In this document: in pieces, positions 477 through 30,369 of the stretch | Layout of the letters: each line of letters begins with the position of its first letter | Position numbering within the stretch: position 1 is the stretch's first letter | From: Ascidiella aspersa | Lineage: Eukaryota | DNA length: 64,000 bases | Reading direction: 5' to 3' | NCBI GenBank assembly: GCA_963924565.1 | Contig: OZ004608.1 | Span: 23,126,001 to 23,190,000 of the forward strand | Notes under the pieces: generated by a model | The model's input: the letters and a program-made list of their open reading frames with translations, nothing else | Databases searched by the model: none | Told to the model about the DNA's origin: nothing | Program-made: the position numbers and the translations under genes

Positions 477-1561
477 CATATGCCGGATTCGGATTCATTA
501 AGTTGCATTTTAACCATGGACAAGATTTGATCCTCATCGTAAGTCAAATACAAATCATACCCCAACGAGGTTTTTACCACGGTGATAGGGACAGGGCAGA
601 ACAGTAATGCACTCTCGTACTCGCAAGAGGATGCTGTGTGAATGGTCTCGTGGAGGTATGCTCCTCGTTTCTGCAGTTCTGAATTGTCAGCATTGTTTTC
701 CATATATCGGAGGAGCGAGTTATAAGCTAAAGAAGAGGCGCCACTTCGTCGTGACGACATTTCGGGGCTGGAGGCTGATTTTACTATGGATTCGGCGCGG
801 TTCGTTTTTTGGTTGGATTTTGCGAGTGTACTGTTCGACACTGCAGGTTTTGGAGATCGAGTGGAAGACACGACTGACTCATTAACTGTCGGCAACGACG
901 AAGAAGAGTAAATGACCGAGGAATGCTGCGAGGTCAAAGATGATGCAGCATAGAGCGAGGAATTCGGGGTACTCGAAATGTTACAATCGCTTCTTGAATT
1001 ACTTGATTTGCTAACAGTACTTTCGACATTTTTAATGTCAATTTGTTTAGAGTCGAACAGGGAACTGTTTCTGTGTGTTGAAGTGGGTCTATCGGAAAGT
1101 AACGTTGGACTCTGAACATCCATTTTCCTTGTTCTACGCCAATGTTGGTGACCGCTAACGGCTGGATCTTCACTCAAACTAGAGCGAGCTTTATAGCGCG
1201 ATTCACTTGAACCTATACCTGAGCATCCTGAATCTCGCCGCAATTTTTCTGATATTCGTTTGGACAACAGTGAAGATGTCACATTTTTGTCTGCGTTTGG
1301 GTCGTTGTTGTTGACGTACCTTGGCGAGGACGAGGTAGTTGTGTTACACATTCTTACACCGGTTCGGGTTGGGTCGGGATCTGCCGCTCGAGAACCATTG
1401 TGGCTGCGATAAGTTTTTAGCATTGATCGTGACTTCAACAGTGCCTCATTAACTGGTAGCGGCTTCAGCATTCCCCCAGTGGAATTAGAGGAACTGTATC
1501 TGCCCGTATATGCAGATTCATCGCAGTTTTGAGCGTTCACTAGGCTTCTTGTGTGTTCCAT
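477..1561 (-). CDS. PDE4: Alternative N-terminal coding exon (361 aa, Ser-rich), probably of the PDE4 gene
   Basis: Long ORF with first ATG at 1561, ending ...ESESGI-TG|GTAAGA. The phase-2 donor matches the recognisable PDE4 leader exons upstream on the same strand. Assigned by phase and context only; no homologue recognised. Confidence 0.65.
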
Positions 1562-3770
1562 TGTCACGGCTGTGCTATACTTACTGTACAAACTTTTCTA
1601 ACTACCGGACCTTCATATTCACTACAAAGTGTAACTAAATCCGAAATTGACTTCGTTTTTCAAACTTGTTTTCGTTTTAGAAACATTAAGCTTTCATTTA
1701 GGCGAAGTGAAAAACTTTTACAAATGTAACTGTTGCGGTCTGCTTACAGCAGCTGGAATACATTAAAGAAAAAAGGCGAAAGAGCTGTCAACGCTTCATC
1801 CCAGACCTCGTCACACATAATTGACTAACAACATACAGTTTGGCATACCGGGGTAGATCACTTTGGGATTTTCTACTAATTTACAAGAATTGGCAAAATG
1901 TGACAGACATCAGTTGATCGGATGTTTGCCTGCAAAATTTCGTGTTCTGCGTGTCGACATTGGGAGACGGATGTTAACACTTTTTGAATAATATGCACGC
2001 AATATTTTTAAAACCATGTTTACTACAGTAGTATATGTGCTTTGTAATGCCGCCAGTGTTAAACTAATACAATTTCAATAGATATTGTGAAAATTAAACT
2101 GTTCCGCTCAACATCATTTTAAATTTCCCAAGTTAACTTTTGACCATAAGACCTACATCCCACACATGTCACAAGAGAATCACAAACACGTCAGTTCATT
2201 AAGACGTGAGAATGACGTCAATCTCCCGTAACGCATTGCTGATTATTCCATTAACTAATCATTGAAACTTATTTTGCTTTTCATCGCACGGCTGCATTTA
2301 AAGGGTTGACAACCATCTTTAGCAAAAATGTAACAAAAAGTTAAACTAATATAATTCTTTGGTATATTTCTGCCCCCCCAACACCCCCAAAGTCAATCAT
2401 TCTCAAATTTTATCTTTGACAATTAAAACAATTTCGGTATAAAGACATATTGCATGAATCCAGATAAAAATAAAAACAATGCCTAAATGGGTTAAAAATA
2501 TTTACGGAAAATACCGAAGTTCAATTAAAAATTCATATAAAACATACAATATAATTAGGCAACTAATTCGAGTTCTAGCAATTGTAGATATAAAAACAAG
2601 CAATCCTAATTCTATTTTTAGCAAAAGTGATTTAACAAACAACTTATTTCAAGTTAGTTATTAAAATTAAATAATCGTATACATTGATCAAGAGCGGATC
2701 AATAATATAATTTATGTTTTGGGTTTGAAGGGGTGGAATGGTTTGCAAATATGTAACCGAAGTTAAGTTAACAGCGCGAAGTGCAAAATAATGCGTGTAA
2801 ACGGCTATATTTTTACCGTAATGAGTCTTCACACACTTGGATTAGAAGACATATAAAATATTGTCTACTAGACGTTATAGACTTGTGTAAATGCCAAAAA
2901 GTACATTAAACATACATTTAGGCAGAAAATGCTTTTGTGAAGAGTCTTGAGTCTGCACAGTGCTAGGCTTGCGTACACAAAGAAATGGAAATAACACTAC
3001 ACAGTGCCTTTAGGCTGAAAAGATTCTTTTCGGATCGAGAAAATGTAGGAACGAATCGAAATAACTTAAAACCGTAGTATAGAATAAAATATGGATGTAT
3101 TGGGCACTGCAAAATTTGTTATTTCGAAGTTATTTTGTGTTGATTGTTGGATAAACTGTTGAGAGTTTGTTGATTAAACACCTGTTTGTCTGTGTGTTTT
3201 TTGTGACCATTAACTTAGTTTCAGGTATATAGCCTAGTTTTGTAACATGCAGGATATAAACGTCATTTTAGAGCTGCTGTTTATTTATAAAAAGGTGGAC
3301 GCAGTTTTTATTTTTGGGGTCTACTGTTTTAATGAAGTTCAATCATAAAATAATTATGTTTTCACCAATCCAAAGTCTTCAGTCACAACTTGCGATTGTT
3401 TCTGCGGAGGGCAAGTTATTGTGTATACCAATTTTAATTGTGGTGTATGGGTCGATAAAGCGGCTGGAAACCACTTAATGAGAACATATTTTTTGATATT
3501 TGTCTAACGCTAAATCTGGAAGTCAGAAGGCACTGTTAAATAAATGTTTTCTTTCGCCTAACCGTGCTCTATCAGGCCAATGTAGAAAAATAGTGCCACC
3601 TGATGTCTAGATTTAAGTAGAACACTGACCGGGAAAGCAGTCCGTTTTAGCCAGATGTTTTATTTTTTGCGAAAACGATGATCTAGTAAATTTGTAATAT
3701 TAAGCACTTTCTAAAATAGTAATTCCAAAGTAGCAATAGAATTATCTGGTAGATTTTACTAACATCTTAC

Positions 3771-4108
3771 CGCTTTATCCGCAAGATATCAGGACTGAAG
3801 GAGGTCGGAGTACAAGGACTGCTGCAAGCCCTACGCACAGGAATCGGAATTGGTCTTGAGCTGCCTGTCATTATAATAGCGTTTCTTTTCTGGACAACCC
3901 GTTTTTCCCCACAAGTCATCATTTGCTGGCAGTAAGATTGCTGTTGGAACTTTTTGCGCAATTGAAGGACAGGTTGCTTTTTTTTGTCTTGTCGGGAAAA
4001 AATTATATTTGTTTCTGACATAGTGGCCAGATCGGCAGCATCCAACAACGATTGCAAATGGCGATGACAATCATGTTTTAACTTACAGTTTCGGGTTTCA
4101 ACAGACAT
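3771..4108 (-). CDS. PDE4: Alternative N-terminal coding exon (112 aa), probably of the PDE4 gene
   Basis: ATG ORF ending ...DILRIK-CG|GTAAGA (phase-2 donor, 338 nt = 112 codons + 2). Perfect CRE at 4572. Assigned by phase and context. Confidence 0.65.
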
Positions 4109-6844
4109 TTTTCTTGGAATTCGACGATTCTATCTTTCAAATAACACAAACTCTTTTCACGCAGCCTTATAATCAGAAACAGGTAACAACTATTAATGTA
4201 AGCCACTAAAATGAGAAAACTCCAATATGTAAACGTTTTCAATTTGTACGGATTAATACCATAGACAAATAACATACATCCGTAAAGTCATCTCTTTATA
4301 TTTGGACAACACAGATTTGTTGGGCGAAAGTGTTTTTTAATACTCGTATAGGCCTACTGATTTTAAATGTATCTTAACGAGCTCGTGAGATTGTTTGTCG
4401 ATAAACCTTGTATAGCACTATAAGTACATCACAGTCCAAACCATCAGGTGGTCGTACTAACAATACAGTCCAATTTAACCAGGTCGATGATTAACCGTGG
4501 GTATAACGATTGTTGTAAAACTCGTGGTTCCCTCACACCCTCCTATTCAAGTGCGTCCTAAAGCTATCGATTGACGTCAGTGATCGTTTGCGCGTGGGCC
4601 AACTGTGTAGCCCGTCGGTATAGAATACGGCCAAGTCACAGGACTCAAAGGATTTAATCGTTTAGTAAACATAATCTAATACGCCTAAATCAATGAAATA
4701 TAAAAACGAATATGTCCGGATAAGCTAATCTGTAAAGTACAACGTTGTTAGTGTTGTAACATACCTACATATTCTACAATGTAGATGTATATTGGGCGAA
4801 TAATTTCGGTGGTTAGAATAAAAACAAAGTTTCGGATTATGTCTAAAAATATATATTATGTTGCTGCATGTAGTGTACTGAAATGTTTTATCATTTTAAC
4901 TTCTAACCAAAAAATATTAAAAACAACATGATCATTCTTATGAATTTTACTTTTCTAAACTCATACGTAGATTTCAGATTTAAAAATTGCTAAAGCTTGT
5001 TCAACATTGGGTGTTGAGTAGTGACTGTTAAACTCATAATTGAAAACATATACAGTAGTAAAATACCAGCTGCATTTACCAAAAATACCGCCATATTATT
5101 CCAACAAGCATCTTTATTTATTCGCAACCACAGTACATCATACATAGCTATAACAGTTGGCCTGACGACTAACTGATTATCATAAATTACTGCAGCGATA
5201 GCGTCTGAATTTGTTTGGAAAATCAAACAGGGCGAAGCACGAGCTATATCGCCGTAGCCACCCGTAAGACTCCTAAACAAACTTTACCAAATGATGCGAG
5301 TAAAATAGATTTTATGGAGCAAAGTGGTAAACTGCTATCAAAATTTATTTTGAATTTCGATATGCCATGAATTCCGATGTAAAACAAAACCATTTGAACT
5401 TGGTGAAAATAAATATTAACAATGAATATTAAACTTTATAACTGTACTTAAACAGTAGCCTACCTAAAAAGCACATTTATATACAAATAACTGATTTTTT
5501 AAAGAAACCTGATTTCTTCTTATTTTGATCGCAATTACTAATTTCTGGTATGATCACAACCCTATAGTTGAATAAACTAGGTAAAAATATACATCGACCC
5601 TTCGAAGTAAAACACAATAAACATTCTTTCACAATAGTTGACACACAACACCAATTATATCTACATCAAAAGGCAATGCTCTGGAGACTAGGTCGCAATC
5701 AGTAAACGTAAGATCTGCATTGTATTGCTTGAAGAGATATATACTAACCACAGCGAACAGAGCTATCTTAATTTTCAATAGAATTCATTCTGTTTTCGCA
5801 AAACATAATTTTTTCACTGCTTTGGTTTTGTTAAATAGTGGCATCTGAATTGCACCTCAACCCTGTCCTCAATCGCATCCTTGTCGATGTGCCATTTTGC
5901 CTTTTGCTGACTATAGCCGCATTTAACATATTTATTCAGTAAAAGCCAACGGCTAATAAAAAGTTACACAGGAAACATAACGCTAAGACTTAAGTAAATT
6001 ATGAAAGCAACCTGACACTTCCCCACAGCACATTTCGATTACAACCATGATTCATCTACGGTTGGTGTTTTTTTTTTTCGTTTACAAAAACTAAGCGCAA
6101 GGAAAACGTGTGCAACAGCCAAGCACATTTGTTCTGCAGTTCACTAACAGCCAGCCACGGACATCAATTGTAAGTTAATATAAAACAGCTTTTCAAAACC
6201 AAGGGAAAATCGAACGTTTGCGTCTGCAAATCCGCTTTTGTTTGGAACTGAGACGAATGATGAAACGTGGCACAATGCATCGAGTATTGATTGTAATAAA
6301 TGCGTTTGCTTGCGTATTTGTATGTCAATGTATCTATCTATGGTCCTTTCAAACATATGTTCTTAGCGTCCTTTCGGACGGGTGTTATAGATTCTGCAGG
6401 ATTGGTTAATTCGTTAACGTGCAAAAAAAAATTTCGGTTGTGAGACCAGCGCAAACTTTACCTGTAATAAACATATATATCAATAGAATATTTTTGTAAG
6501 TCGTATACCTAAATTTTTGCGTTATTACCATAAAATTACAACAGGAGGTAAAATGGTTCCTTGGTAACTAAGTGATATATAAATACTATAAATAAATAAA
6601 TATAATATTAATTCGTAGAACATCTTGCCTTCCTTTTTTTAAATGTATTCGTGTATGTGTTACCATATTAATGCAACTTTCGCGTATATAAAGGTCAAGC
6701 GTACATTTTTCATTAAACCCAACACTTTCAACAACATGAGATTAAGGAGCAACGAAACTCGGTTAAGCACAACTTACATAGGGGTAATAGGGGTTCTCAA
6801 ATTTGTTAGGCCACCCGCCCCTAAAAAAATCATCGAAACTCGGC

Positions 6845-7392
6845 AAAAAAACTTGAAACAGTACACACCAACCGTAGACAAGGTAAAAAAGCCCTGTTAA
6901 TTGGTTGCAAATCAATCATAAACAAAAACTCTGCATAAAGAAACTCACCAATAGAACTAAATTGAAATTAAAAACAAATGGAATTAAAAAGAAGGATATA
7001 ATATCTCTCGGCACACTTGAGAGTTAGAAACGGCACCCCAAAGCCCCGATTAGGAACAACTGGTTACCTTTTAACGTGGAATTGAATTGGAATTAAAAAA
7101 ATAAAGTTAAAAAAAATTGAAAAATTGGAATTAAAAAGTGGTTAAATGCAATATCGCAAAAAAAACTTGAAACAGCAAACACCAACCGTACACAAGGTAA
7201 AAAAGCCCTGTTAATTGGTTGCAAATCAATCGTTCAGAAAAACTGTGCATAAAGAAGCTCACCAATAGAACTAAATTGAAAAAAAAAGGAATTAAAAAGA
7301 AGAATATAATACCTCTCGGCACACTTAAGAGTTAGAAACGGCACCCTAAAGCCCCGGTTAGGAACCACTGATTATACCTTTTAACGTAGAAT
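6845..7392. repeat. Diverged direct duplication of about 240 bp (about 6845-7083 and 7160-7392)
   Basis: Both copies run from AAAAAACTTGAAACAG through GCCCTGTTAATTGGTTGCAAATCAATC to TACCTTTTAACGT. Confidence 0.85.
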
Positions 7393-11069: not shown

Positions 11070-11677
11070 CATATCCACGAGTGGCGTCGGAATTGAGGTG
11101 GGCGACCTACTGACAAATGGAAATGCGGCAATCTGTTGAAACGATGTTGTTGAAGGCTTTCGTAACCTCTTTTTTCAGCTATCTCATGCTTACTGCTACC
11201 AGTGCGACACGATAGTTCGTCATTCACACCAAGGTCGATATCGTCCCCACTACTTTGACTCTCACAACAGTCGCTATCACCCACAGATCCCCCACCGAAC
11301 CCGAAGTGGCCACGCGTTCCAGCAGATCTGCGTGGCTTGTGTCCATGTTTTGCCTTATTTTGCTTATTAGGTAAGTCAAGACTTGTCCTGTCTCCCGATT
11401 GGTGGTGGTTACAATACAAAGATGATATGACTGAATGTGACTCTACATTAGACGAAGGCGACGATAAGCCACCTGATTTGTTGGCAGTCATTGGTGCAAG
11501 TTTATAAATCCCTGGTCGTATTTTGACGCTGGCCGTCAGCAAATCGTCATCTGGAGCGTTAACGTCGTTCAGTTTGATAATAGGAAGCAGCGGAAGGTTG
11601 TTGGACATTGGTAAACATACAGATTCACTAGGTGAGAAGTGTTGCATATTTTTTAAATTATCTAGCGCCGCAGGCAT
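11070..11677 (-). CDS. PDE4: PDE4D3-like alternative N-terminal exon of cAMP-specific phosphodiesterase 4
   Basis: Ends QFRRHSWI-TG|GTATGT. The vertebrate PDE4D3 leader ends PFRRHSWIC (PKA site RRHS) just before the common exon. Phase 2; strong acceptor TCTCTTTGTAACAG| at 11752. Confidence 0.88.
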
Positions 11678-12841
11678 AAAGTGATAAATGCATATACAAC
11701 TCCACTAATTTTTTTAGTAAGCCACAGCACAACAACTTGTAAAGTAATATCCTGTTACAAAGAGACCCAGTCGCATGATTAATACGATTATTTATTATTA
11801 TTATTAACATTATTGGCTATTACAAGAAATTCCTTATTGTACAACTATACTCAAGGCTTCCTGTGATCTTTATTAAACATACTGGGCTGCAGTCGAAAAA
11901 GTAAAATCGAACTATTTTCATCTCTACACAATCGCCTTTTAAACAACCTGATTAAGGTAATGTCTTTGAAATAAAACTCAGAAATTGTTTTCCATTTTTA
12001 AGCCTCGACTACTGAGGTGGTAAGCTACACACTCAACGCAGCGCAACCAAAAATAATATATGTAATTCCAATTAGGCATTTCAATCAATCGTGCTCCTTA
12101 AAACCTTTTTTATGGCAGACCAATGGCGGGCATGCAAACAATTGGATTGTTAAGAGTTGTGCGACCAAGAGGTGGCCATTAATTTCCTGTCCCTGCAACA
12201 ATGAGCTAGCCATAATATAATGCAACCAGTTTAATAAATTACACTTTAGGAAAAGGTCGAATGGCGACTAATTCATAATTTTGGTACACTAAAAACCAAC
12301 CTATAAGTTTATGCATAAAAATCCACCAAAAATGTTAACCAAATAAGCCAAAGCATGAGAAAAATTAGGACAGCTTGAACGTTTACTTTTAGGTCAAGAA
12401 GTTTTCTAACAGATTATAAACATTATTAATACTGACAAACCATACACTAGACGAGGCCTTCTACACAACTTCGATCATTAAAATATCTGTATTTCCATAG
12501 CTTGTCATTAAGTCAACGGTCACATTAAAATAAAGCAATACGTTGTAGCTTTGCAGACATGTGGTTGCACAACCCCACAAAATGATACGTTCGCGTTCGT
12601 TTTAACAGGAAAGTCGATTAGTAGGGATGGCGGTCGATGCATTGTCATACGACTGGTTCTATTATTTATTACGGCATTATAATATTTATGATTCAGGAAA
12701 AAACACAAGTGATACCAAAGGCGATTTTCAGGACAAAAAATTATGAACGACTTTATAAAATATAAGGTACTACAGATGCTTAATTTAAACATGAAGTTAT
12801 GTTTAAATTGAGATGGAAATATACTGCATAACATGAACTTA

Positions 12842-13170
12842 ATGATGATTTTCCAAGCCAAAAAGTCAAGATGCCATCATCTTGATTAAGACGTTTCGAT
12901 ACGAACTTGTATCATCTTCAGTTCATGTGACTGATACAAGTTCGTATTGAAGATGATACAAGTTCGTATCGAAGATGATACAAGTTCGTATCGAAACGTC
13001 TTTATCAGGATGATGTCGATCTACTTGACGTTTTTGACTTTGAAATTCATTATCAAGCTACATTACAGATCCGTGCATAGTGTACCAAGTATTGGTATCC
13101 TTTTCGAACTTAATCTTTGTGTTAACAAAATAAAAAGGGTCGAGTAGATCGACATCATCCTGATGACTCG
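12842..13170. mobile_element. Imperfect palindrome, probable Penelope-like pseudo-LTR remnant with minimal hammerhead motif
   Basis: Arms about 12842-12919 and 12971-13052; 22-bp tandem unit GAAGATGATACAAGTTCGTATC. The minus strand reads CTGAAGA-T-GATAC-AAGTTC-GTATC-GAAACGTC. A second inverted copy lies at 13143-13163. Confidence 0.55.
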
Positions 13171-13348
13171 ACATACAATGCGCAAAAGTATATAAATATG
13201 CTTATTCTTTACTACTGTTTTTTTCACTACTGGGGGCATGTTTTTACTGATTTATTATAGCTGCACCAGAAGTTAGCGCCTAACACTAAATGCAAAGTTA
13301 TACAATTGTTGTCTTGCACAGATCAGCTCCACAATAGCCTCCAGCTTG

Positions 13349-13419
13349 TATTTAAACTATTTAGCCTATTTAAACTATTTAAACTATTTAAACTATTTAA
13401 ACTATTTAAACTATTTAGC
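13349..13419. repeat. 9-bp tandem repeat (TATTTAAAC)n, about 8 units
   Basis: Direct reading. Confidence 0.92.
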
Positions 13420-16229
13420 TTTAATATTTTCATTTTTTTTCAAATTAGATTAAATTTAAAATAACAATAATTAAAATCGTAAAAAATGTACAAATTAATC
13501 CACATTAAGATTGGCACTTTTCAGGCTGAACAATCCACTTGCTTGTATAAACATTCTGGCTAGAAAACTAAAAAAGTGCCTCCGACAAGTAGCATTTTAA
13601 TTACAAACAGAAATTAGGTTTGAATTAGAACGAGCAGAATGTCGCTCATTCGTCGAACTTTACTCGACTACAGGTATCCAGGTGTCCAAGTCTGCTGTTT
13701 TGAAATGTATGTGTTTTTAACATTAATCGTTGTATTACTCTATTTCAATCCAAATTGAAATGTATTTTTAAAAATTACAAAATAATAAACGTTTTATTGC
13801 TGCCTTAACTTTGGTTTACAGTTTCACTGAGATTTTTAATTTCACCTGGCCAGCAAAGGATATAACGTGCTTATACCGGTATACGCTGATGTTTCTGGTT
13901 GCAAAATATATACAGGAACACTGACTTATGTTTATCTACTATTTCAATGGTTACGTGCCTGACAAAAAGCAAGAGATAAACAGTAAAACATACCACAGTG
14001 AAAAGAGTGTAACAATAGTATTTGTACAAGAACAAAATTGCTTTAAATTATACGTAACTTAACGCTACATTATTGACGTGACGTAAACACAACATTATTG
14101 CTTAGCTGGTCTCCCTTCAAATTACTGTGGCGTGCGAACTACCCACAGAACTGCACACAACCCCCTGTTTTTCGTTGGACGATCGGTGATAGGTGATGTC
14201 GTTTGTACAGCGCTCGACGCTGAGTCCTATCTGATTACACGTAAGCTGGCTGAACAATGCAAGCAATATAATAGGCGGGTGTAAAATAACAGGCCTTGTC
14301 GATTACTGAGTTTCGCCAAACAAAACTCTTTAACAGCATACATTTATAAACAGATGTCATTTAAAGCTCAAAAGTAAACATAGCATCACACAAAATTGTC
14401 CCATTTTGCCTCGGACAAGCAAAGTATAAACACGTTGGCGCGAGGCATGCGGTATACTCCTTCACGCTAAACCTGCATTGTAAAACAGCAATGTGCGATA
14501 TTGCTTTTTAGCATTTCTTCGCGCAACTCTTTATCGGCAATGTTGACAGGCCAAACATGGGTCGCTTCCACGACTAGACCGCCATTCACCTCAGCTGCGC
14601 GATTAACTTTTGTCGCCTTTCCACGGTTTTATGAGTTGTATGTCCGGACACACCATGGCGTCAGACTTTTTTCCGAAATATGCGCTCTAAAGTGAAAAGC
14701 AAACAGACAGAGTAAACCACAAATCTGCTTTTAATGGAATTCGCGCGGGCTGAGCTTCCTGACTCCGCAGTTAAGACACGTTTACCCCTTCACACAACGC
14801 CTATGCACACTTATACAATAGGTTGAGCGAATGGCACACCAAAAAAAAACATGCAGATTTAGCACAAACTTAACACAAGCGCGGGTTATGGCAATGACAC
14901 GCCCACTTTACAGTCGTTCCGGTGTGGAGACGCATTTGTATAAAACTCTTAACCTTACCAGACCAAGTTGTTCAAGTGGAACATCAACAATTAACAAAAC
15001 TAACATCACTATATAACACCCATTTCAATTACCGACGAAATGGTGTAATTGTTGCGCAGTTTATTTTATTGGCTACTCTATGTGTTGTTTTCATTTTATT
15101 CACCATTCCTGTTTTATTCACTGCATTTTTCACACATATTTGTTCTCCGCTGCACCTCAATGTCTATTCCTATCTTTTTACGTTTTCGGACACCTTTTAT
15201 CATTAGATATATTCGGCACTCTTATTTCTCATCACGTTTATTTGTGAAAAAGATTTTCGAGATTCGCTATACTAAACAGTTGTGCCCCTTTTTAGATATT
15301 GTACGCTTATTATTTTATCCTCTAAATTGTCTATTGTAGTCTACTGTCGTCTCAGACATCGGGCAGACCATTAAGCAGAGCTCAATATTTTGTGGGAACA
15401 ATAAGAATTTGTCATATGGAAACATTATTACTGTGTTAGGTGATATATATTTCTATAAGAACTGATTTAATATGTTTTGGTATAAGTTTTTAAACTCAAA
15501 TGTAGCTAGGGGTTATGGCTGGGTAATAGCCTTAACCCGAGCTCCATCAAACTTTTTCTAACTGAGATAGGAAACATTTGGGAGGTATAGGTCACAGACT
15601 ATAACAGACTAAACAAAAAATCCAATTCTATAATGGCGCCGAGGTACTTTAGTACAGCAATAAAAATATCATTTTTGTAAACCAAGTTCTATCAAACTAC
15701 AATACCAAAAAAAACTTGAATTATTAGAACAGTATGACTACAAAGTTGAATAAATCGACTTAGTAATTTAAAATTGAAATACTATTGAACGGTATATTGA
15801 TCAAACGTCCTAACCTTAAACTGTATGGAAATTTTAACAATTCGCAATTTAAAGCCCCTTTGAAGCATAACAGTTCATGAAATATTCATAAATGCTTAGC
15901 AGCCTCTGGCTCACAATTATGGTAAAGTCATTGAAAAAACGTTTTTTAAAGTTAGGTCTGTAGTATATAGGACAATATAAGAAATGGTTTACATTTGTAA
16001 GTTACGACAATAAAAGTGAAATATTTGTAAATCAACAGCTCAGAAGTGGTACAGATAAATTTAGGCAAAATAGGTAACTTCTACTTAACCCTAGCAAATT
16101 CGATGTACTGTTTAGAAAATCATGGTGAAATACGTTCTTCCAGAGTCTAGGCCCCATCTCCCCTTTTTGCTTTTAGTTGATATCATGACTAAATCACTGG
16201 CCATCAGTGATGATTCAAAATCTATCTAA

Positions 16230-16314
16230 AAAGGGGCGGGAAAACACGCTCGATGTACCTAATGGACATTCGGCACCACCTGGGAACTCATACCTCGACC
16301 GTTACACCATTGCC
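16230..16314 (-). mobile_element. Possible degenerate tRNA-derived SINE head
   Basis: A-box-like TGGTGTAACGG followed closely by a degenerate B-box-like GGTATGAGTTCC; spacing is too short for an intact tRNA. Confidence 0.25.
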
Positions 16315-16726
16315 AAGTATGATTGTTTTTGTTTTGCGTTCACGGTACAAAAACAATGAATATATCTAGGCAAAGTTGTGTAGAAACGGCTCAAAACGCA
16401 AGGTGTTGGTAAAACCAGAAAAAATACATATTAAGTTGCAATAGATTTAAATCATATGGGGATACGTTAGTAATATTAAGCTTGCTGCAATACTGCTAAT
16501 ATATATAGGACTGAAAACTATTTAACAGGCATATTTTACTAAATTGCAACTCATCGGAAGGTGTCTACAATATAGTGATGCTACACTACAGTTTCACTAA
16601 AGTCGAAAAAAGATTTATACTATTTTCACAGCACAGGATAATTTAACTAATCATGTTCAACGTAACGATTCACTTCAGCTGTTTTTTGTTCTGCGGATAC
16701 GCTAGTGTGAACAATGAACACGTTAC

Positions 16727-17289
16727 CTGGTTCTTGCCACAGTAAATCGCCTGCTTGTTTCCCCGCCTCGCTTCACCATAAAACGCCTCATTGTTTGGGG
16801 AGAAACGGGCGGAGAAGGCCCGGGACTGATACCTCCCGGCAGAAGTCCACAGCGTTGCTTCTCCTGTTGGATTTTTGCCAGGTGATGCTTATGCTCGAGC
16901 CTCCGAAGCGTTCCAGGCGATAAGTGAGGAACCAAGCAGTTGGGATGGGCGTTGCTGTGTTGGCTGTACATTGGGCCGTCATCCGGTTCTCTAACTTCCA
17001 TTCTAGGATAATTTTTTGCAGTTGTTTTTTGAGTTGGGGCATCCATCAAAACTTGTAGATTTTCTACAGAAGTAGGTTGTGGTTCAGAGATGGACTTCTC
17101 TGGTAGAGTACAGAGTTTGCTTGAACGGCGATTGAACGCAGGCGACGTAAGTAAACTTCGTCGATCTGGTTCGCTGAAGGTTTGGCCTTTGGCAAGCGAC
17201 TGTTTTTTCTGTTGACTGTCTTCATTGCGATGAGTTGAAGTAAAACTAAACGGTCGAAAAGTAGCTAGTTCTTTATCACCTTTTGACAT
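16727..17289 (-). CDS. PDE4: PDE4D5/PDE4B3-like alternative N-terminal exon
   Basis: Ends ISPGPSPPVSPQTMRRFM...RRFTVART-AG|GTAACG, versus PDE4D5 ...SPVISPRNSPRLLRRM...RRFTVAHTC. Phase 2; strong acceptor TTTTTGTTTTTAG| at 17386. Confidence 0.9.
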
Positions 17290-18917
17290 TTTGGGTTTCT
17301 ATGCTTCCAATGTATTTGAATAACAAATTACACTCTTATAAAGTTAAATAGCTTGAATAAAACATAATAAAAGTACAATTTACATCTAAAAACAAAAATT
17401 TTTGTTTGGAAGATTTAAGGTACCTACAAATAATGACCATTTCATTAAACATTAGTATAATATAATATGCTTTTAGGGGTACCTACATGAAGTTGATTTG
17501 AAATTTAATTCTTATTGACTTGTTATAATGTTTTGACTTTTACAGATTTTCCATATATTTATGAATCAACCGGACTAAACCAAACAGTTGCTATAACAAA
17601 TAAAAGATTCGTGATGCAAGGAAAATTAGATAAATTAGCTTTGTAACAGAGCAGAAGAATAGTTCTTTGATAATATCTTGGTAAATTTTCAACATAAGTA
17701 TTAACAAATCAGTAATTCAACTGGTATACGTATGCTGCCTAATTTTTGCTCTATATTTCTTGACACTCATAGTGGTCTCAGTTTTTTCTGTTTATCTCGA
17801 TACCTAATTATAAAATGTATGACAATATCCAAGAGAGTTATTGATTTTTCTCGTTTACCAGCAGGTCCACACAGACCAAGGCTTGCATAAGGTCAGCTAA
17901 GTACATTTAATATTTTTTGTCCAATACATGCTTGAACGACACCGATCTATTTAAAGCCCTTTGAGTTTAACGTGTAGAAAAACAGCATCTGTATTTGCTA
18001 TTTAACGTGTTTGTTGGGCGTATTGAGAATGAATCTCTGTTTAAAATCGTCATTCCACACTTAACCCCGTAATCCGTATGTGTCCTGCTGATGCAGTCGG
18101 CAACTGACGCAACAAATAAGCAGTCGCTCTAGTGGCATTTAGTTTGGCACGGCTGCCGGAAAAACTCAACTAGACTGAACTGTAGACACAACTATTATAT
18201 TGCAATACTTTCACGAGGTGCCCGCGCTGTGAGCTGTATTCATTAAATGCGCAATTATGCTGGATTTTTTTGTAGTTTGTAGTTTCGATTTAGTGGAGTT
18301 GAATTGTACCGGTACGGCTGTCTCACCTGTTAAAATATACAACTTGCTTAGTTCGTTTTTTTATTTAAATTATTAGCTAAACTTTACTTAAGGGCTGACC
18401 AATTCATCAGAAAAACGGTTGTACTCTGACAGTTTTGTCGTCACATATCAGTATACTATATGTTATGAAAGCTACTGGTTTCGGCTTAGGAGATTGTTTC
18501 TTCGGGTTCTGCATACATACTATATTATTTCTTCGGAAATAATATTAAATAACAAGCTGATAATATACTACCATATTTCCCCACGTTTGTTATATATCTA
18601 CTGTGGCTTGTTAGATGGATTTATCGAACACAGCAAAAAACTAATGGAGGTACATCTTGCACCAACACAAGCCCTGAACAATCCATGTGATGGTTATTTA
18701 GAAATACAGAAAAACATTCCTTTTTAGCTTTCCGTTAAACGTTTATTTGTTTCCACTAATTATATGTATACATGATCTAGTTGGCGTAATAATCGCCTGA
18801 ATTTAAGACTTGCATGTAAGGCGCTTATACCGGCGCAGAAGGTGCGGGGTAATTTGGCCGCAAAAATGATATCTGAATAAATGCAATGTATATAGGATAT
18901 CATCTTGTTATACTAAC

Positions 18918-22000: not shown

Positions 22001-25000
22001 TTCAGAGTAACACAATTACAACTTTTTACGACAACACATAAAACACCAACATTTACGCACATCTAAAGTAGAACAACAAAATTTTAGGGCATTAATAATA
22101 TTATGCCTTCCATAAAGGGAATTATCTCACTTGAATAATGCCCAGCACTAAGTTTGTATGTATTTAAAGCATTTTTTATATTATAAAAATGAATCTGACC
22201 AATCAAGAAATTTGGTCAGAATCATATAGATAGAAGAACCTACGTTGTACACAGGGGTAGGGAACCAGACAGCGCCACTCAAATGATATTTTTGCTAACT
22301 TAAACGATGTAAATTGTAAACAAAAAAGCTTTTCGCTTCGCGCAATTTAAGTTTTGCTATATATTGCTTTGGGGACATCGTTTTAGGTTAAGGTTTCGTG
22401 CTTACCATGACAAGTTTCCGTATTTAAAAAATACACATATAATTGAAAGTATACCGGCCACTATTCAACAATAAACAACGGCCTTTAACAATAAACAACG
22501 GCCTTACATGGTGTTTTCAAGATCATTTCGATAAATTCTGTTATGTCGAACAATGTGATTTTTTGTTTTCTCGGTGCGTCACTCTACTTCTAAATTAAAC
22601 GTTCCTTCCATCTAAATCTATTAAATGCGTTTTTGTTCGCATAGTTCGCGAGATGCAACTTTGTTTGCATTTTTGCGTACGAGTTTGCTCGAATACAGTC
22701 AGTTTCTTAGATAACTTGTTTTAGGACGTCAAGTTACGCCGCAAATTTGTAACATTTAAATAAAAAATGTCATACCTCTCCCCCCTACAAAAAATCGGAG
22801 TCCGCTCTTATTCCCTATAAGAAATTAAACCTTGTTCAAAAATAAATTCGCCTAAATCTAGTTGCCAAGAATCACTAATTGTCTTAGTAGCGTGTAATCG
22901 ACAAAAATAAAATTTATTTTTATATGGTACTTATTTAATGTCTTAGGGGGCGGAATTACAAAAGAGGGGCCTGATACAAAAAAGTTAGAAAACACTGATT
23001 TACGGGATAGCAATGGTTAATTATCTTACCAAAAAGTTAGAAAATGGCAAATCTAGATCTTAGGCCAAGCATTCCAGGTGCACAAACTGTGATTTGTTTT
23101 TTTTTCGTTTAAAGTATTGCTTACCCAAAATTGCTTATCGTTCGCAGGATACATTGTGCAAAGTCTCCCGGCACAAATAAACTCGCCACCAACAAAAAGT
23201 GTGAGTAAAAAGACAAAAAACGTTTTAGTAACCAAATGAATGTAACCCTAACCTTTATTTTTTTGGTTAATAAACAAGAAAAAGGGTCAAAGGTGCATTG
23301 ATGCCTAAAATTTAAGTAAGGGAAGGTAATTGGTCGCGCGTATTATTTTTAAATTATTAGTTGAATATCTTTATGGAAAAGTCCTAACACAGTTCCCAAC
23401 ACGGTAAGTAAGTAACTAAGTAGGTAAGTTAATTAGCGTGTTCGTTTTGCGTGTGCTCTTGAAAAGTCTGTTAAATTAGTTTTGGCTGTTTCCTTTCCGT
23501 TTACATCCTGCCTGGTTGCTGAACTGACCATTTAATCCCTAACGCATACGCATTCCTGCAAACGTTAGTGTAATTCGAATTCTGCTGCATGAGACAACGA
23601 AATGCACGCCTTACTGGCGAGACGTGTTTTTACTGCACTGTAAGATATTTTGTTGAAATCGAACTATGCTGAATTTTTCGAGTTTACAATAAATCTATAA
23701 GCGACCTGGCAGAATGCACTTTGTTATGCAATGGCAGTTTGTTTAGTTTCGATTTAGATTTTTTGGGGGAGTTGAAATAGCACTGTGGTTAATGTCTTAC
23801 CTGTTGAAATATACAGACAAAACATATTTTTTGAGCTATATATTGTTCTGGGGTTAGGTTTACATTTTGCACTCCAGGGCAGCCACAGGTTGTTTATAAA
23901 CAGCCAAGTAACTCTCTAGCTCCCCCTAGCAATAGTAACAAGAAAAATGAATGTCGGAACACGGAGTTTAGTTAGGCCATCTAAACATTTTGCGTTTTTT
24001 TTAGAATTTTTTTTAGAACCTGACTAATTTAACGACATTCATAGTAAGGCGAGTGTATAAAAAGGGAGGGTAAACAATAACTTAAACGTAAACCTGTTTT
24101 TCCATACGTTGTTTACATAGCGTAAATAGCGACTTCAAAACGTGTTATCATTCAAAACAGTATTGATAACAATGCATCAACAGTGACTTAACTGCAAACA
24201 ACGCAAAATGTCGTGAAAGGGTATCTTGTTCGCTAACTGACAAACAGCTTTCTTGAAGGTCCTAAATGTTCTGCTATTTAGGGCACAACAAATTGAGAAA
24301 AATATTATTTCACACATATTGCCTTTTCCAAACTCTAAAATGCTATGATTTCTAGAGTAATAGAGAAGTTAAATAGCCAATATGAGGAAGGATAGTTGTT
24401 GGGCATGTCCGTTAGGGACGTGTGGTCGTAAAACAACAAAGGAAATTATGTTAGCAGATAGTACATATCTTTAAAAAGGTTGAATGTTCGGTCTCCAGGC
24501 GGCAAATGGAAAATTATTGATCATTTCAAATGTCAACAAGGAAAGAGTCGCACGAAATCTTATGACGTGCGTCTTTTTGTACAGTCCTAGTTACGCCCAC
24601 AGGCGGCAGTGAAACAGCACAGACGGGAATCGATGTGTGTCAGTTACAACCGTGTTTTGGAAACGCATAATCGAACGAGAAACCTATTAAGAAGGCAACG
24701 AAAAATATCTATTGTAAAGTAGGGTAGGAAGACACAATAAAATCCAAATCCCTGGCGGGGCGACATTTAGTAACATCAATCTGTATATCGAAGTAGACCT
24801 TTGAAAAACAAACATTTTCATACGATCAGCGTTTTTAATTTTAGAACCGAAACTCAAAAAACAAAAGTCAGTCTTCATTATTTTTGACTTGAGTATGGTA
24901 TGGCAAACAAATTATGTATGACTTTTCACAAAATCGACAGACTGGTTGTCGTCTTTATTTGATAACCACACTACGTATTCATCTGAATAAAGTGAAATTT

Positions 25001-25562
25001 AGCGAAATCGTTTAAGATCGATAAACCATTCAGTCTAAAAAAATTCAAAAAAAATGAACAGTATATTTAAATAACAAACGAACAACATTGGTTTGGTACT
25101 TAATTGGGAACTTTCTGTCACAAATAATGTCATTTGGCCTGTTGTTATTGTGATTTATGACTTATCAGTCAAATGCTGACCGATTGCCAAAACAGCTGGC
25201 TGGTAAACACGGAAAGGCAATGGATTGAATTTTCAGCATTTGAATAATTTACGAGTGTTGCTGTGCTGTGACAGTAAAAAATGCGTCGACCAACGTACAC
25301 ATATATTAAAGAGAGGCATAAACAAGGTACAACAAAAACACTATGACAGATACGGCTCTCGGCTTGTCGCGACCCGCATATTCCCATAAAATATAATTGA
25401 ATTGTATAGCTTACATAAACATGCATTTGTACGTGTACTGTTATTCCAACTTCTAAAGGTAGGCAATACATTTCTCAACAAACCAAGGCACAATCTGCAC
25501 TAACTTACACATTGTTGAAGCTGAACAATAAGTTAGATTCGTGTAATATTACAAAGCCTTAC

Positions 25563-25695
25563 TTGTTGAACGTTTGATAGGACCACTCGCTCATTCGGCG
25601 TCTTGCATTAAGGCTCGGGAGGCGAGCGGCAGATGCACGTCGTAGATAAAGCGGGCGATACAGGCTATCTTCGTAAATAAAAGACAATGGGTCGC
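25563..25695 (-). CDS. PDE4: PDE4D7/PDE4B1-like N-terminus, exon 3 (not in the ORF track)
   Basis: CCTTCTTTAG|...|GTAAGG, 133 nt, phase 1 to 2. Encodes GDPLSFIYEDSLYRPLYLRRASAARLPSLNARRRMSEWSYQTFN, versus PDE4D7 DPFRGMEPYLVRRLSCRNIQLPPL. Confidence 0.75.
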
Positions 25696-26145
25696 CTAAA
25701 GAAGGAATGAATCAAAATCTTTACAATACAATAGGAAATTGTGAAAGCGAACAAACTTTTATGCAATATCTGTGGCCGAAAAAGCCAGACAGGTTTGCGT
25801 ATCAGTTTGATTTTTTAAAACACATTGTATTTAAAAAAGCAAGTGTAAAGCAGCATAGCCATTTGGTAGTAAAACACTAGTGATAAGTTACGTTTAACGT
25901 TTTATTATTTTACATTAAATGTATTAGTATATTCTAGCCAGTAAATATGTTTAAAACGAAAATTGTATTGATGAAAGTTCAGCTGTTTTTGTAATGGAAT
26001 AATGCCAGGTGTAATGTTCAACCGGTTATCGTTACCGCAGATAAGTGCGTTATTCGCAAAGAATAACTGTGGAATGGGGCTGCTAGCTATGGAACCTGTG
26101 TTTACTAACATAACACAGGCAACATTATTACGTTGAAAGGAATAC

Positions 26146-26241
26146 CTTCGCTACATCCGAGCCGTGGTCGGTGACCCGTAACAGCATCTCCAGCTGATTT
26201 CGATCGACCCATGGTGATACCTTTCTTCGACTCTTCAACGG
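26146..26241 (-). CDS. PDE4: PDE4D7-like N-terminus, exon 2
   Basis: TGTTTCAG|96 nt|GTATTC, phase 1 to 1. Encodes VEESKKGITMGRSKSAGDAVTGHRPRLGCSE; RSKSA occurs in the PDE4D7 leader. Joins both neighbouring exons in frame. Confidence 0.72.
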
Positions 26242-28636
26242 CTGAAACATAAAACAAAATTACTTTACAATCAAAGATAACAACCAAAGGAAAAATTAGG
26301 ACAGTAAAAAAATCTGGTGTGCTAAAGAAATTGTTGTCAAGTTTTGTTGTCTGGAAGATATTTAGCTTCCTCAAAAAAGTGGACGATCCTAAAAGCTTTT
26401 AAAACCACACAAAAAAAGTCATAGTACGATAATAAAATTAACATTGAAATCAGCACATATAAACTATAGTTCTAAATTAAGCAAAAAAATATTTTGTTAA
26501 GCAGAAACACTTCATAGGTTGAAATTCTAATCGACCTATAGTTATGAGACATCGCTAGTCACAGTTAACATTTTTCAAATTATTTATAATAAGAAATGTT
26601 TAAAGAGGAAGTAGGATATCAAACAATGTACACTGTTGACAAAGCATTTAGGCGCGGCAGTCCTCATCCTCAAATTGTTTCAACAATGTTCTGTCGCGAA
26701 GTGTTTAAGAAATAGAACATCTAACAATATATTTAGAGGGTTTCGGGCCTTCTTATTTGGCGTTTCCAAGTGCTAGTGTCGTTTAGGTTGGTTTCTTACT
26801 AATAGGTCGACTAAATTTTACTGCGGATCGTTTCGTGTTTTTAAAGGAGGTACCCATTCGACTTTCTTTACCAATACAATTTTTAAGTATCGTAAAATTA
26901 GTATTGTCTTTACAATTAAATAGCATAATTATAAATGCTCGATTTCCAAGTGGGATGTTTCTATTGGATGTAGATTGCAGTTATGTATATTTTTACAATA
27001 CCGACAATATGTTTGTAAAAGGTTGGCGTCAAATGGCTGTACTGCAGTTGGTAAAGAACATAGTTTCCAAGAGGACAAAAAACAAAAAACTTTTTTTCGT
27101 ACCGGTCAAAAAAAGTCGACTGTTTTTTAACCTAATATTGCACATGTCGTACGGTGCTGTATAATAACAATTCGAACTATCTTACATGTCGAACACTGAT
27201 TATAGAAGAATGAGGCCCTAAACCCTAGCGTTTTTATACCTTGATCTTTGCCAATGCAACAAATTTTGTGTTTTCCATGGCTCAGACCAAAAAATATATG
27301 TAAATTGAACGAAATAATAAACAATCTCGCGCTATGTTCGATTGTTTACCGTCCCTGCAATATGACCGTTCGGCGTTCACCCGTGTGAGTACCATAGTCA
27401 ATTTAAATATGAAATTAAATTCTATTTAAAATAAACGTAGTTTTATTGTTCGACGTGCAAAGGTTTTGTGTTTTTAGGTTGCTATAGTGGTGAGGAACAG
27501 CGACACTTATCAAAAACAGCGACTAATGTTTTTTTGAATGACTTTTGGGGGTACGAGAAAGTGTAGCTCGATTTACCCAAATAACACATGTTTTGGGATA
27601 CGATTTAGTTATTTTGACACACAAAACGTTTAACAAAACATGGCTAGTTTGACTTAATGCTACAATCTACATAATAAAAGAGAAAGTTTGTGGGATGTGT
27701 GTGTGTGTGTGGCAACATGTTCGACCAGTCATTTTACAATATATTTGTGTTACATCACAATGGAAATGTTACGTCACACTCAATGCGATTTACAACATGG
27801 TACAATGTTACCAAGATAGTGTTCAAGCATGTATCCCAAGCCCCAGCGTAGTTAATTTAATATGGTATATTTAGAAGATTTGTGGACCCCCGGTTGAGAA
27901 CCACTGTTATAAACCAAATTTCGGCAGACAATTATCGCGTTTGTTGTTGCAGTAAGTAAAAGATAGTCCAAGTTTAATTTACCTGCCGGGAAATAAAAAA
28001 ATAAAACCAAGTACATTTTCTTCATAAAGTAAAATTTTAATGTTTCCAACTAAGACTATTATCTTTAGGGTCTTATTGATGCCTGTTTACGCGTAAAATT
28101 TAGGTAGAGTTCGCAAATTTACGAAGAATTGAATTTTTATTTTTAAGCCATTTGTTAGCGATAGTGATTGAGGCCAAAGCCTAATGACTTCTTACAATGT
28201 GTTTACCCACGCAATACTTAGCAGAGTTCGCGAAATCTTGCGTTTATTGCAGTAGTTAACAGTAAGCATTTGTTTTTTCAGTGAGAATTTTTCTCACGTT
28301 TGACGCAGTTTAGCACCAGGATTACGTATTTGCTTAAACATGACGCTATCAAGCAAGTCTAAGCAATTGCTGCTGCATCCTAAAGTTTTACGTTTAGGAG
28401 TTATTCTCAATTGACAAACGTCACGGGTTTTCGTTAAAGATGTATTGCATGCTTAGCCAAGTGTTGTGCGCTATAGTTAACCGACTTCACATCACATGAT
28501 TTGAAATTTCTATTTAGTGTCACTTAGTTGAAACGTTTAGGCATAAGCAAATTTGTTATGACATTTAAAAAAATATGTTTGCATTATTTATGTCATTTAC
28601 GAAGATCTTACGAATAAATGTAAAAATTCTATTTAA

Positions 28637-28664
28637 CCTGGGCAACGCCGGGTATTTCGTCTAG
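28637..28664 (+). mobile_element. Helitron-type 3' terminus
   Basis: Hairpin CCTGGGCAACGCCGGG followed 8 nt later by CTAG|T; the 5' end was not located. Confidence 0.6.
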
Positions 28665-30140
28665 TAAATTCTAAAACCACTCGAGTCATATAGAAACCTT
28701 AGTAGTTTAACTTTTATGCAAGCGTGTTTTGTCCTACTGCATAATAATGCATGAATGTTTGACTTATCCTTGCTATTCCAACAGTTTAGTTATTAATACA
28801 AAACAAAGCAATGTTACAACTTATTACTTAAAGCAAAAATCTCCCAGTCAAAACCTTCCGACAACTGGAGTTAAAAAAACAAATGTAGCATACCCGCTGC
28901 ACTAGGTGGCCATTAGGCAACGCAAAAAAACTATGCAAACAAAATAAGTTTTAAAAACTATGCAAACAAAATAAGTTGTTTTAATTACCAACCTATAAGG
29001 TATGAGAAAAGCTCAGTCATGCTGAACAAGAAAGACCAATAGATATTTAAAGTATAGTTGTAGTAACTTAAAGCCTACAAAGCAAACAGTCTTTTATTGT
29101 TTGTCAGCTCAAGAATTAAATGTTTATTGGACAATCTTCTCGCAATACAACCAATAAACGGTAAAAAATCAGATTTTCTTAAACGGATTCCACAACAAAC
29201 CTGACATACGACCTTTTCATAATGTCGAATCGCTGAGAGGCTGCCTAGCGCCTAATCTTTCTTACTGCGCGGGCATTCGCAAGCAACCGTCTAGCTTCTG
29301 GCTTACGTCTTGGTTATGACGTCACACACCTTCAAGGCAACAGTAATTTGTGCTTTTTTTCTTAGGTCTGCTAAAAATCTGAAGGAAGACTGCGAGATTA
29401 TTTCAGATTTGCTGAAAGCAGCAGTTCTTGTCTGCTAACCAAATAACAAGATTTACTTTTGTTGAAACGTGGGGTGTTAGTCACTTACGATGATACAACT
29501 TTTGCGGCTGGCCCGCTAATGTAAACGTAAACACAGCATTTGTCAGCAATTGAATTGTACACATGTCTGTACAAATACTTGCAAGTGATTGCTAAAACAT
29601 TTTCAAAGATTTTGTTTTACAGATTTAATTCCCAGTTTAGCTTTTCAGGGTGCACCTTGATCCTTTCAAGTGCCTTCAGTCTAAAAACCCAAAGCAAAGT
29701 AATTTTTTTTATAAATAAATCTGTCTTTTATAATATGTCTGATTGTCTGGGTACTTGTATTTCCGTACCGTTTTATGTTGATCTTTAAATATATTATATT
29801 GCTTCAGTATTGCCTGTGGGCCGTCGCCGCTTTCGGCTGCCTGTTAAGCGGACATATCGCATAGTTATTTAACAGCCCTTTCTTATATGCATTTCAGCTG
29901 CAAAGGTTAAAAAACAATCACATCACGAAAAGTATGTTTTTTGTGGTTATGTAACTCAGCGGCAGCGCTTTTCAGTAAATATGCTTATTCAACTGTTTCA
30001 TTTTGACGTTGAAAAAATTTGAAATGTACAAAGTTTAGGCAGTGCAACAACATTACAAAAATAGTTAACATTATCGTAAAATTGCGCACGTGACAAAATA
30101 CTTTGCCTTTTCACTCGTTTAGGCTTATCAAAATACTTAC

Positions 30141-30369
30141 GTGTTGAAAAGGGTTGCTTTGCCCAGCGAAGACGTATCCGATATTGTGATTCTTCTTCGC
30201 ATATTAAGTCCTCACTGTCATCGCTATCACAATTCTGATCCCGAAACTTGTTATTATTGGACGGCAAAGTTTCACAGGAAAATCGTTCTAAGAATTCTTC
30301 CCAGCTACATATTTCATTGTTTTGAGGTAATTTACCTTCTTTGGATTTTGTCGAAGTCCTTTTAAACAT
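30141..30369 (-). CDS. PDE4: PDE4 distal N-terminus, exon 1
   Basis: ATG at 30369, MFKRTSTKSKEGKLPQ...WAKQPFST-C|GTAAGT. Consensus phase-1 donor that reads in frame into the exon starting at 26241. Confidence 0.62.

Follow-up and report, generated by a model that had tools for sequence, protein, structure and literature searches.

An ascidian PDE4 gene carries a compact row of putative alternative leaders, two of them related to vertebrate D5- and D3-type N-termini

Introduction

The N-terminal leaders of PDE4 enzymes set where in the cell cyclic AMP (cAMP) is degraded. In mammals the PDE4D5 leader binds RACK1 and beta-arrestin, while PDE4D3 partners with mAKAP, and in Drosophila the invertebrate PDE4 gene dunce uses several promoters and alternative 5′ exons. 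Binding to RACK1 and beta-arrestin is mentioned in the abstract of PMC7460819, and passages of PMC4346272 give the motif LVRRLSCR for PDE4D7 and describe PKA phosphorylation of PDE4D3 within its unique N-terminus. The leaders of PDE4D follow the order D7, D4, D5, D3, D8, D9 according to the legend of Fig. 6 in PMC2929239. The same paper, the one study devoted to the evolution of these leaders, describes their progressive gain, with D3, D4, D5, D7 and D8 conserved mainly in mammals, and uses Ciona as an outgroup only. Here we describe a 64,000-nucleotide stretch of DNA from the ascidian Ascidiella aspersa (the window; C2:23126001-23190000, in an assembly of 308.6 Mb and 75 contigs). A reading made from the letters of the window alone, called here the sequence-only reading, had proposed that its minus strand holds five mutually exclusive PDE4 N-termini in a vertebrate-like order. 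We find it highly probable that positions 477-30369 on this strand form the 5′ part of a single ascidian PDE4 gene with a row of alternative leaders, two of which, B and C, are orthologous to the D5- and D3-type leaders of vertebrates.

Results

The sequence-only reading had predicted that a common exon with a phase-2 acceptor, encoding UCR1 and its RRESF motif, would lie to the left of the window. Such an exon is present ~7.0 kb left of window base 1, at C2:23118994-23118803 on the minus strand (2994..2803 of L006, the 10 kb adjoining the window on the left, where position 2994 corresponds to C2:23118994; L005 and L004 lie further left). Its acceptor, ttttacag/T (splice boundaries are marked by a slash), is in phase 2, so that the first exon base completes a codon, and its donor is CC/gtaagt. 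The 63 encoded residues read FDVENG...QRRESFLY and include the PKA site RRESF. The only two matches to PF18100 (PDE4_UCR) in the genome, at 50.6 and 47.9 bits and above the cut-off, lie at C2:23114409-23114789 (minus strand), 11.2-11.6 kb left of the window, and three exon matches to PF00233 (PDEase_I) follow on the same strand at C2:23104743-23108109. Tunicate PDE4 proteins align exon by exon from L006 2993 down to L004 ~7785, with catalytic exons 65-97% identical to the Phallusia protein; each exon was searched singly. The gene downstream of the leaders is the single PDE4 of this genome, a member of the dunce family in its long form (UCR1-UCR2-catalytic), and it spans ~52.6 kb.

A phmmer search with the 63-residue UCR1 exon returned 289 proteins at E <= 0.001. 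The best is PDE4 isoform X4 of Clavelina lepadiformis (76% identity); next come Phallusia mammillata, Ciona intestinalis, Ciona savignyi and Styela clava, with vertebrates only after these. The best matches among PDE4 proteins place the host among the ascidian tunicates and outside the vertebrates, in agreement with the invertebrate proposed from the letters alone.

Upstream of the common exon, the minus-strand open reading frames (ORFs) between 477 and 30369 measure 372, 113, 210, 188 and 123 codons. All five of the proposed donors are GT donors placed two bases into a codon, and hence in phase 2 as had been claimed: 477 (TG/gtaaga), 3771 (CG/gtaaga), 11070 (TG/gtatgt), 16727 (AG/gtaacg) and 25563 (AA/gtaagg). 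The exon lengths modulo 3 are consistent with this assignment. The donors stand, while the number of N-termini grows from five to seven, as two further leader units, G and F, lie in the 7 kb to the left of the window. Read 5′ to 3′, the window holds A (three exons), B, C, D and E; G and F come next and are followed by the first common exon. The seven units together take up ~37.4 kb, counting from the ATG at 30369 as far as the common acceptor. The final leader donor is in phase 2 in 7/7 units, G and F included, and because these phase-2 donors match the single phase-2 acceptor, all seven could join the UCR1 exon. The units are as follows.

30141..30369, minus strand: leader A exon 1 (A1); ATG at 30369, 76 codons plus 1 base, donor C/gtaagt in phase 1.
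26146..26241, minus strand: leader A middle exon (A-mid); 96 nt, acceptor tttcag/CC, donor GAAG/gtattc, phase 1 at both ends; translation GRSKSAGDAVTGHRPR.
25563..25695, minus strand: leader A last exon (A2); acceptor tttag/GC in phase 1, donor AA/gtaagg in phase 2; encodes YLRRASAARLPSLNARRRMSEWS.
16727..17289, minus strand: leader B; ATG at 17289, 187 codons plus 2 bases, donor AG/gtaacg in phase 2; ends SRRFTVART(S).
11070..11677, minus strand: leader C; ATG at 11677, 202 codons plus 2 bases, donor TG/gtatgt in phase 2; ends PPQFRRHSWI(C).
3771..4108, minus strand: leader D; ATG at 4108, 112 codons plus 2 bases, donor CG/gtaaga in phase 2; encodes SSRPIPIPVRRACSSPCTP...LRIK(R).
477..1561, minus strand: leader E; ATG at 1561, 361 codons plus 2 bases, donor TG/gtaaga in phase 2; long and serine-rich.
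L006 7023..6929, minus strand: leader G; encodes MMPKGHVIPTPLSIVYSISTPTPKIKRIFSF, donor AA/gtaagg in phase 2.
L006 4047..3818, minus strand: leader F; donor CG/gtttgt in phase 2.

The exon ending at 25563 had been read as an alternative N-terminus. Its phase-2 donor is as described, while its acceptor tttag/GC makes it an internal exon, in a phase that fits the phase-1 donors of both A1 and A-mid. A-mid, which the sequence-only reading did not list, could be skipped without breaking the frame, and a regular-expression scan upstream of it found no mini first exon of the form M..SHL. Pfam searches of six ORFs gave only sub-threshold chance matches.

Further downstream, a 298-codon ORF sits within an intron, after the UCR2 exons and before the PDE4 exon that follows them (L005 4089-4985, minus strand; C2:23110089-23110985). 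It matched no Pfam family and none of the PDE4 proteins compared with it, and might be the leader of a short form without UCR1, or chance.

We then compared the locus with the PDE4 sets of Ciona intestinalis (X1-X10), Styela clava (X1-X11) and Clavelina lepadiformis (X1-X9) and with a cDNA-derived protein of Phallusia mammillata. Using tblastn, 29 tunicate leaders (all sequence before FDVENG, from RefSeq and UniProt) were searched against the window and L004-L006. Each matching leader type hit one locus only, and the seven types fall in one consistent 5′-to-3′ order. A1 (window 30381-30163) is weakly matched by residues 2-86 of Clavelina X3 (E = 0.019), with a common acidic DESDD...EESEYR stretch. 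A-mid (26251-26117) is matched by Styela X6 and X7 (E = 4e-8 and 6e-8) and by Ciona (E = 0.004), and A2 (25675-25580) by Clavelina X3, X5 and X7 (E = 6e-11), Ciona (E = 1.4e-5) and Styela (E = 1e-3). At B (17250-16729), Clavelina X1 gives E = 4.5e-33 with its own 5′ part among the aligned sequence, ahead of Ciona (E = 6e-27) and Styela X5 (E = 3.5e-17). C (11602-11072) aligns with Styela X3 (E = 0.007) and shares RRHSWI exactly. D (3904-3770) finds Clavelina X4 (E = 1e-8) and Ciona X7 (E = 1.5e-6); the motif PPIPIP occurs in Styela X8. The strongest match is that of E (1561-479) to the Phallusia PDE4 N-terminus (E = 4e-66, 42.5% identity over 381 columns), with Ciona X1 (E = 5e-31) and Styela X1 (E = 5e-14) behind it. 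Left of the window, G (L006 7020-6931) is matched by Clavelina X9 (E = 3e-10) and Ciona (E = 1e-7), and F (L006 4020-3826) by Ciona X9 (E = 8e-4) and Clavelina X6 (E = 0.017).

These leaders also occupy the expected place in the relatives. Types A-G stand immediately before FDVENG in Clavelina, Ciona, Styela and Phallusia proteins in RefSeq and UniProt, and the junction residue predicted from the split codon is the one found there: S for B, C for C and E, R for D and N for G. The A2-type exon directly precedes FDVENG in Clavelina X3, X5 and X7, Ciona X8 and Styela X6 and X7. Likewise, Ciona X5, Ciona F7AP89 and Styela X3 all show the C-type ending RRHSWIC/FDVENG, on leaders of 159 residues in Ciona, 198 in Styela and 34 in Ciona F7AP89. 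Public RefSeq isoforms number at least 9 in Clavelina, at least 10 in Ciona and at least 11 in Styela. The tunicate sets thus share leader types A-G and the junction residues with this locus and come from different species, the common exon being 76% identical to that of Clavelina and leader E 42.5% to that of Phallusia.

To compare the leaders with those of vertebrates, we grouped vertebrate N-termini according to the motif that precedes FDV[DE]NG. The labels D3, D4, D5, D7, D8 and D9 given to these classes are in part those that we take to apply, with anchors in the literature for D7 (LVRRLSCR) and for the order. Leader B matches vertebrate D5-type N-termini by blastp at E = 3.6e-6 to 3e-3 (database of 221 N-termini), with 73-76 residues aligned. 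Its Smith-Waterman score against the D5 class is 82, compared with 36.9 +/- 5.6 for shuffles, and 0/300 shuffles reach it; the alignment with a bat PDE4D5-type leader covers 73 residues and reaches the N-terminal half of the bat leader. When 279 vertebrate N-termini were searched against the DNA by tblastn, the 12 best matches were all of the D5 class and all fell on 16729-16947. A hidden Markov model (HMM) of the D5 class ranked the B ORF first among 2502 stop-to-stop ORFs (E = 2e-4), and hhalign paired B with D5 at 95.5% (E = 1.4e-8).

Leader C gives a parallel picture. Against the D3 class its Smith-Waterman score is 44, compared with 27.2 +/- 4.0, and again 0/300 shuffles reach it. The D3 HMM places the C ORF first among the 2502 ORFs (E = 0.018), and hhalign gives 95.1% (E = 3.1e-8), while the remaining 47/49 type pairs in the hhalign matrix have E >= 0.0023. 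Leader C ends in FRRHSWI, followed by a split codon TG/T that encodes C, and R[RK]HSW stands at the junction in 50 vertebrate proteins of 4D, 4B and 4C type. In the alignment, SP..SP..SP..[FL]R[RK]..RRFT[VL]A.T and RRHSW[IVL][CG] are shared by tunicates, hagfish, lamprey, stingray and mammals. On these comparisons we judge B to be orthologous to the PDE4D5/4B1-type leader and C to the PDE4D3-type leader. Among the early-branching vertebrates compared, hagfish and lamprey have D5-type leaders, and a stingray '4C-like' gene carries D7-, D5- and D3-type leaders, in keeping with leaders older than the split of the PDE4 paralogues. A separate assignment of C to the vertebrate '..PIDI..' class was rejected: HLSVGRPPQFR against HLSLGKVPRFR was reached in 2/300 shuffles, but the comparison failed with a second member of the class (score 23) and hhalign gave E = 0.17.

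Several observations weigh against the overall reading, and the first concerns leader C. Only its last 7-8 residues match vertebrates, with nothing similar upstream of RRHSWI, and at 202 residues it is not a short leader like that of PDE4D3 (~15 residues, MMHVNNFPF..). Together with the poor conservation and low complexity of leaders elsewhere, this would fit a likeness of B and C to D5 and D3 that reflects no common descent, only convergence or coincidence in short basic motifs (RRFT, RRHS). We regard that explanation as very improbable. Across tunicates, hagfish, lamprey, stingray, teleosts, birds and mammals, the motifs form the final residues ahead of one shared splice junction, whose split codon (C or S) is likewise shared. 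B aligns with D5-type leaders over 73-76 residues, no shuffle in 300 matches the score of B or C, the D5 and D3 HMMs each rank the right ORF first of 2502, and hhalign reaches E ~1e-8 for both pairs.

Further points on the same side are that the junction evidence comes from models of the relatives, mostly automatic RefSeq predictions, and that some of these models join leaders to one another. In Ciona X2-X4, an A2-like segment stands upstream of a B-like segment in one protein; in Ciona X6, A2 is followed by a G-type segment, and in X8 it immediately precedes FDVENG. Leader A may be a multi-exon 5′ module whose 25563 donor also splices to an internal acceptor of B or to G, giving A+B′, A+G and A alone, a serious alternative to which we give somewhat less than an even chance. 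Homology to Ciona X2 and X3 starts exactly at 17172, one base past the candidate phase-2 acceptor ccttcag/C (17175-17174), in a phase that fits the 25563 donor. In leader G, an in-frame ttattag/T upstream of the ATG (L006 7044-7043, minus strand) could be a candidate phase-2 acceptor for an A2-G composite as in Ciona X6. On the other side, the Ciona composites are automatic models, and reads are absent over the B region in the RNA sampled. Clavelina X1 has its own methionine in the B-type exon, with a 5′ part that matches window 17250-17173, and B therefore also works as a first exon. Leader B probably serves as a first exon and, through the internal acceptor, as a second exon. The proposal of mutually exclusive leaders accordingly survives in that each type is found directly before FDVENG in relatives, and fails as strict exclusivity in the Ciona models that join A2-like to B-like and G-like segments.

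The last point against the reading of this region as a PDE4 leader row comes from RNA. Reads from one RNA-seq run labelled as this species and of unspecified tissue, of which ~6/100 was sampled, were aligned to window 11500-17499, and neither B (16727-17289) nor the 5′ portion of C had any coverage in that sample. Some ORFs could be unexpressed relics or chance, with fewer leaders used in this species; the weak donor of F (gtttgt) and the weak match of A1 to relatives (E = 0.019) would suit this explanation. It appears unlikely, given that the leader ORFs are open over 31-361 codons with a correct-phase donor at each, that the leader proteins are conserved with species sharing only 42-76% identity, and that the RNA sample is ~6/100 of one run. 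The sample is neutral on leader expression, neither supporting nor refuting it. In all, 175 reads aligned, 169 of them only partly, and all depth fell in four bins (12700-13099 and 16100-16499), mostly around a repeat near 12.7-13.1 kb. At 12700-13100 reads pile up to a depth of ~30, but they fit only in part and show many loose ends and variant letters; the probable source is a dispersed repeat with transcripts from other places in the genome.

The correspondence of leader A with the D7 type is less clear. D7-type leaders start with MK[KR]..S.. and carry an RR.S PKA site followed by LQLPPL..R. In earlier Smith-Waterman, HMM and hhalign runs the D7 class included three or more misclassified sequences; for the final hhalign comparison it was trimmed to six. 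Similarly, a first hhalign matrix used A2 as master row with A-mid left out, and was rerun with A-mid. A collinear pattern is visible, with RSKSA / DPL / YLRRAS..RLPSL.ARR in A and SRSKSAS / EDPL / YLVRRLS..QLPPLAFRQ in D7. Against the cleaned D7 profile, hhalign aligned 44 columns of A with a score of 14.0, compared with 9.0 +/- 1.9, a score reached in 8/300 shuffles (probability 0.8%, E = 0.067). None of the other six tunicate types scores as high against D7 (8.1-10.3), and the A-D7 pair is reciprocal-best. Clavelina X7 scored 48 against a D7 protein by Smith-Waterman, compared with 32.5 +/- 4.8 (6/500 shuffles). Taken alone, A2 gave no signal against D7 (114/300 and 30/500 shuffles by Smith-Waterman; hhalign E = 0.18), nor did A-mid (186/500 shuffles), and the D7 HMM placed no A ORF within its top 6. 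The last D7 exon (QRPT[ST]LPL..IAITSAD) has no detectable counterpart in the window or L004-L006, as searched by tblastn with 14 D7-class N-termini and by the D7 HMM. That leader A is of D7 type is possible but unproven. Of the D7-, D5-, D3-like order that had been claimed, the D5-then-D3 part is borne out by blast, Smith-Waterman shuffles, HMMs and hhalign, and the D7-like part comes through only weakly. Similarly, the PKA-type motifs that were said to be kept are all present in the window (RRAS in A2, RRFT in B, RRHS in C), while RRAS is conserved as RR.S in only 2/4 tunicate A leaders; tunicate A leaders end in RRRMSEWS plus 5-8 residues.

An alternative assignment of leader A to the D4/4A type, suggested by eye from DAVTGHRPR in A-mid and RRRMSEWS in A2, was rejected, as its hhalign score of 8.1 was reached in 73/100 shuffles. 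In Smith-Waterman comparisons with D4-type leaders, shuffles reached the score in 34/500 cases for A-mid, 370/500 for A2, 404/500 for Clavelina, 107/500 for Ciona and 6/500 for Styela. No D4-type or D8-type exon was detectable by the tblastn, HMM and hhalign tests.

The remaining leaders show fainter likenesses. F is weakly paired with D9 (hhalign E = 0.0023, score 16.6 compared with 8.2 +/- 1.7, 0/100 shuffles, reciprocal-best). G against D8 gave E = 0.033 with 6/100 shuffles and was not reciprocal. D is weakly paired with the vertebrate 'PIDI..KRR' class (hhalign 3.5%, E = 0.012, 1/100 shuffles, reciprocal-best); leader D has SSRPIPIP. This vertebrate class, observed in the course of the comparison, ends in SP.A.N[KR]PIDI...[KR]RR before FDV[DE]NG and comprises proteins P0036, P0089, P0350, P0351, P0046 and P0166.

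Leader E showed no convincing counterpart among the vertebrate leader classes in the set compared. Its assignment to the D9 type was rejected: the Smith-Waterman score was reached in 1/300 shuffles, but the alignment is a spurious one between serine-rich segments. The conserved C-terminal block of E, in the last third of the leader (window 479-808, minus strand), runs AYNSLLRYMEN and then LLFCPVPITVVKTSLGYDLYLTYDEDQILSMVKMQL, and contains LLFCPVPITVVKTSLGYDLYLTYDEDQILSMVKMQLNES. It is almost unchanged in Phallusia and can still be recognised in Ciona and Styela, with 27 invariant columns across the four species, and looks like a small folded module without a Pfam name. A homologue search with the Phallusia leader E returned the query alone, its 8000 scored candidates being swamped by serine-rich words, and so is uninformative on distribution. 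As judged from these comparisons, leaders D and E have clear relatives in tunicates only.

Upstream of the PDE4 leaders, the window also holds the coding region of a long terminal repeat (LTR) retrotransposon (48827-52503, minus strand), with ORFs of 215, 222 and 646 codons. It encodes gag (PF03732, weak), aspartyl protease, reverse transcriptase, RNase H and integrase, and coincides with a GC-rich stretch at 48-52 kb.

Discussion

The exon and phase anatomy, the PDE4 identity, the homology of the leaders and the junctions in relatives are direct observations, and a mechanism can be proposed on this ground. One of the promoters upstream of the leader units would be chosen, and the phase-2 donor of that unit would then join the UCR1 exon at its one phase-2 acceptor. 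Long-form enzymes of at least seven kinds would result, alike in their catalytic core and different only at the N-terminus. By analogy with mammals, the leaders may place the enzyme with different partners, and the extra RRxS/T sites that they carry may be phosphorylated.

Paralogous vertebrate PDE4 genes share leader types, as is familiar to specialists, and for this reason an origin of leaders before the duplications is no great surprise. The tunicate isoforms are, moreover, already public in RefSeq, so the gain is limited. It lies in a compact single-copy locus that dates two mammalian leader types to the common ancestor of tunicates and vertebrates: because B and C appear orthologous to the D5- and D3-type leaders and stand in the same order, these two types would predate the vertebrate genome duplications. 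The sequence-only reading had placed an entire isoform code before those duplications and within about 30 kb. For B-D5 and C-D3 the antiquity holds, for A-D7 the support is weak, and the array is longer, at ~37 kb. As PDE4 leaders set the site of cAMP degradation, ancient ones hint at fundamental targeting partnerships.

For D5 and D3, the window data contradict the account in PMC2929239, as do the leaders of stingray, hagfish and lamprey. Our literature search found no paper on a tunicate PDE4 leader array or its link to D5 and D3, although the supplements of PMC2929239 may list Ciona variants. A bolder reading is that the ancestral chordate PDE4 had an ordered battery of at least five leaders that has stayed collinear for >500 million years, with A, B, C..F equal to D7, D5, D3..D9 and G perhaps to D8. 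We consider this doubtful, if possible. All mapped pairs are collinear with D7, D4, D5, D3, D8, D9, the pairs B-D5 and C-D3 being strong and A-D7 and F-D9 weak. If true, leaders D and E were either kept by tunicates and lost in vertebrates or added by tunicates, E with a conserved module of ~45 residues. An ordered battery would also overturn the view, as set out in PMC2929239, of a stepwise gain of long-form leaders within vertebrates and mammals.

The closest described system is vertebrate PDE4D. In both genes, several alternative 5′ exons are spliced, or in the ascidian would be spliced, to a first UCR1 exon that starts with FDV[DE]NG. Both have a D5-type leader (RRFTVAHTC in vertebrates) upstream of a D3-type leader (RRHSWIC), the vertebrate order being that of the Fig. 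6 legend in PMC2929239, and in both the D3-type leader carries a PKA-type RRxS site. They differ in number and scale, as the tunicate has one PDE4 gene where vertebrates have four paralogues, and its seven leaders fit in ~37 kb, compared with ~1.5 Mb for the whole human PDE4D locus (a figure given in a passage of PMC5342582). With transgenesis routine in some species, this 37-kb single-copy version of the 1.5-Mb human locus would make a practical model for promoter choice and leader function.

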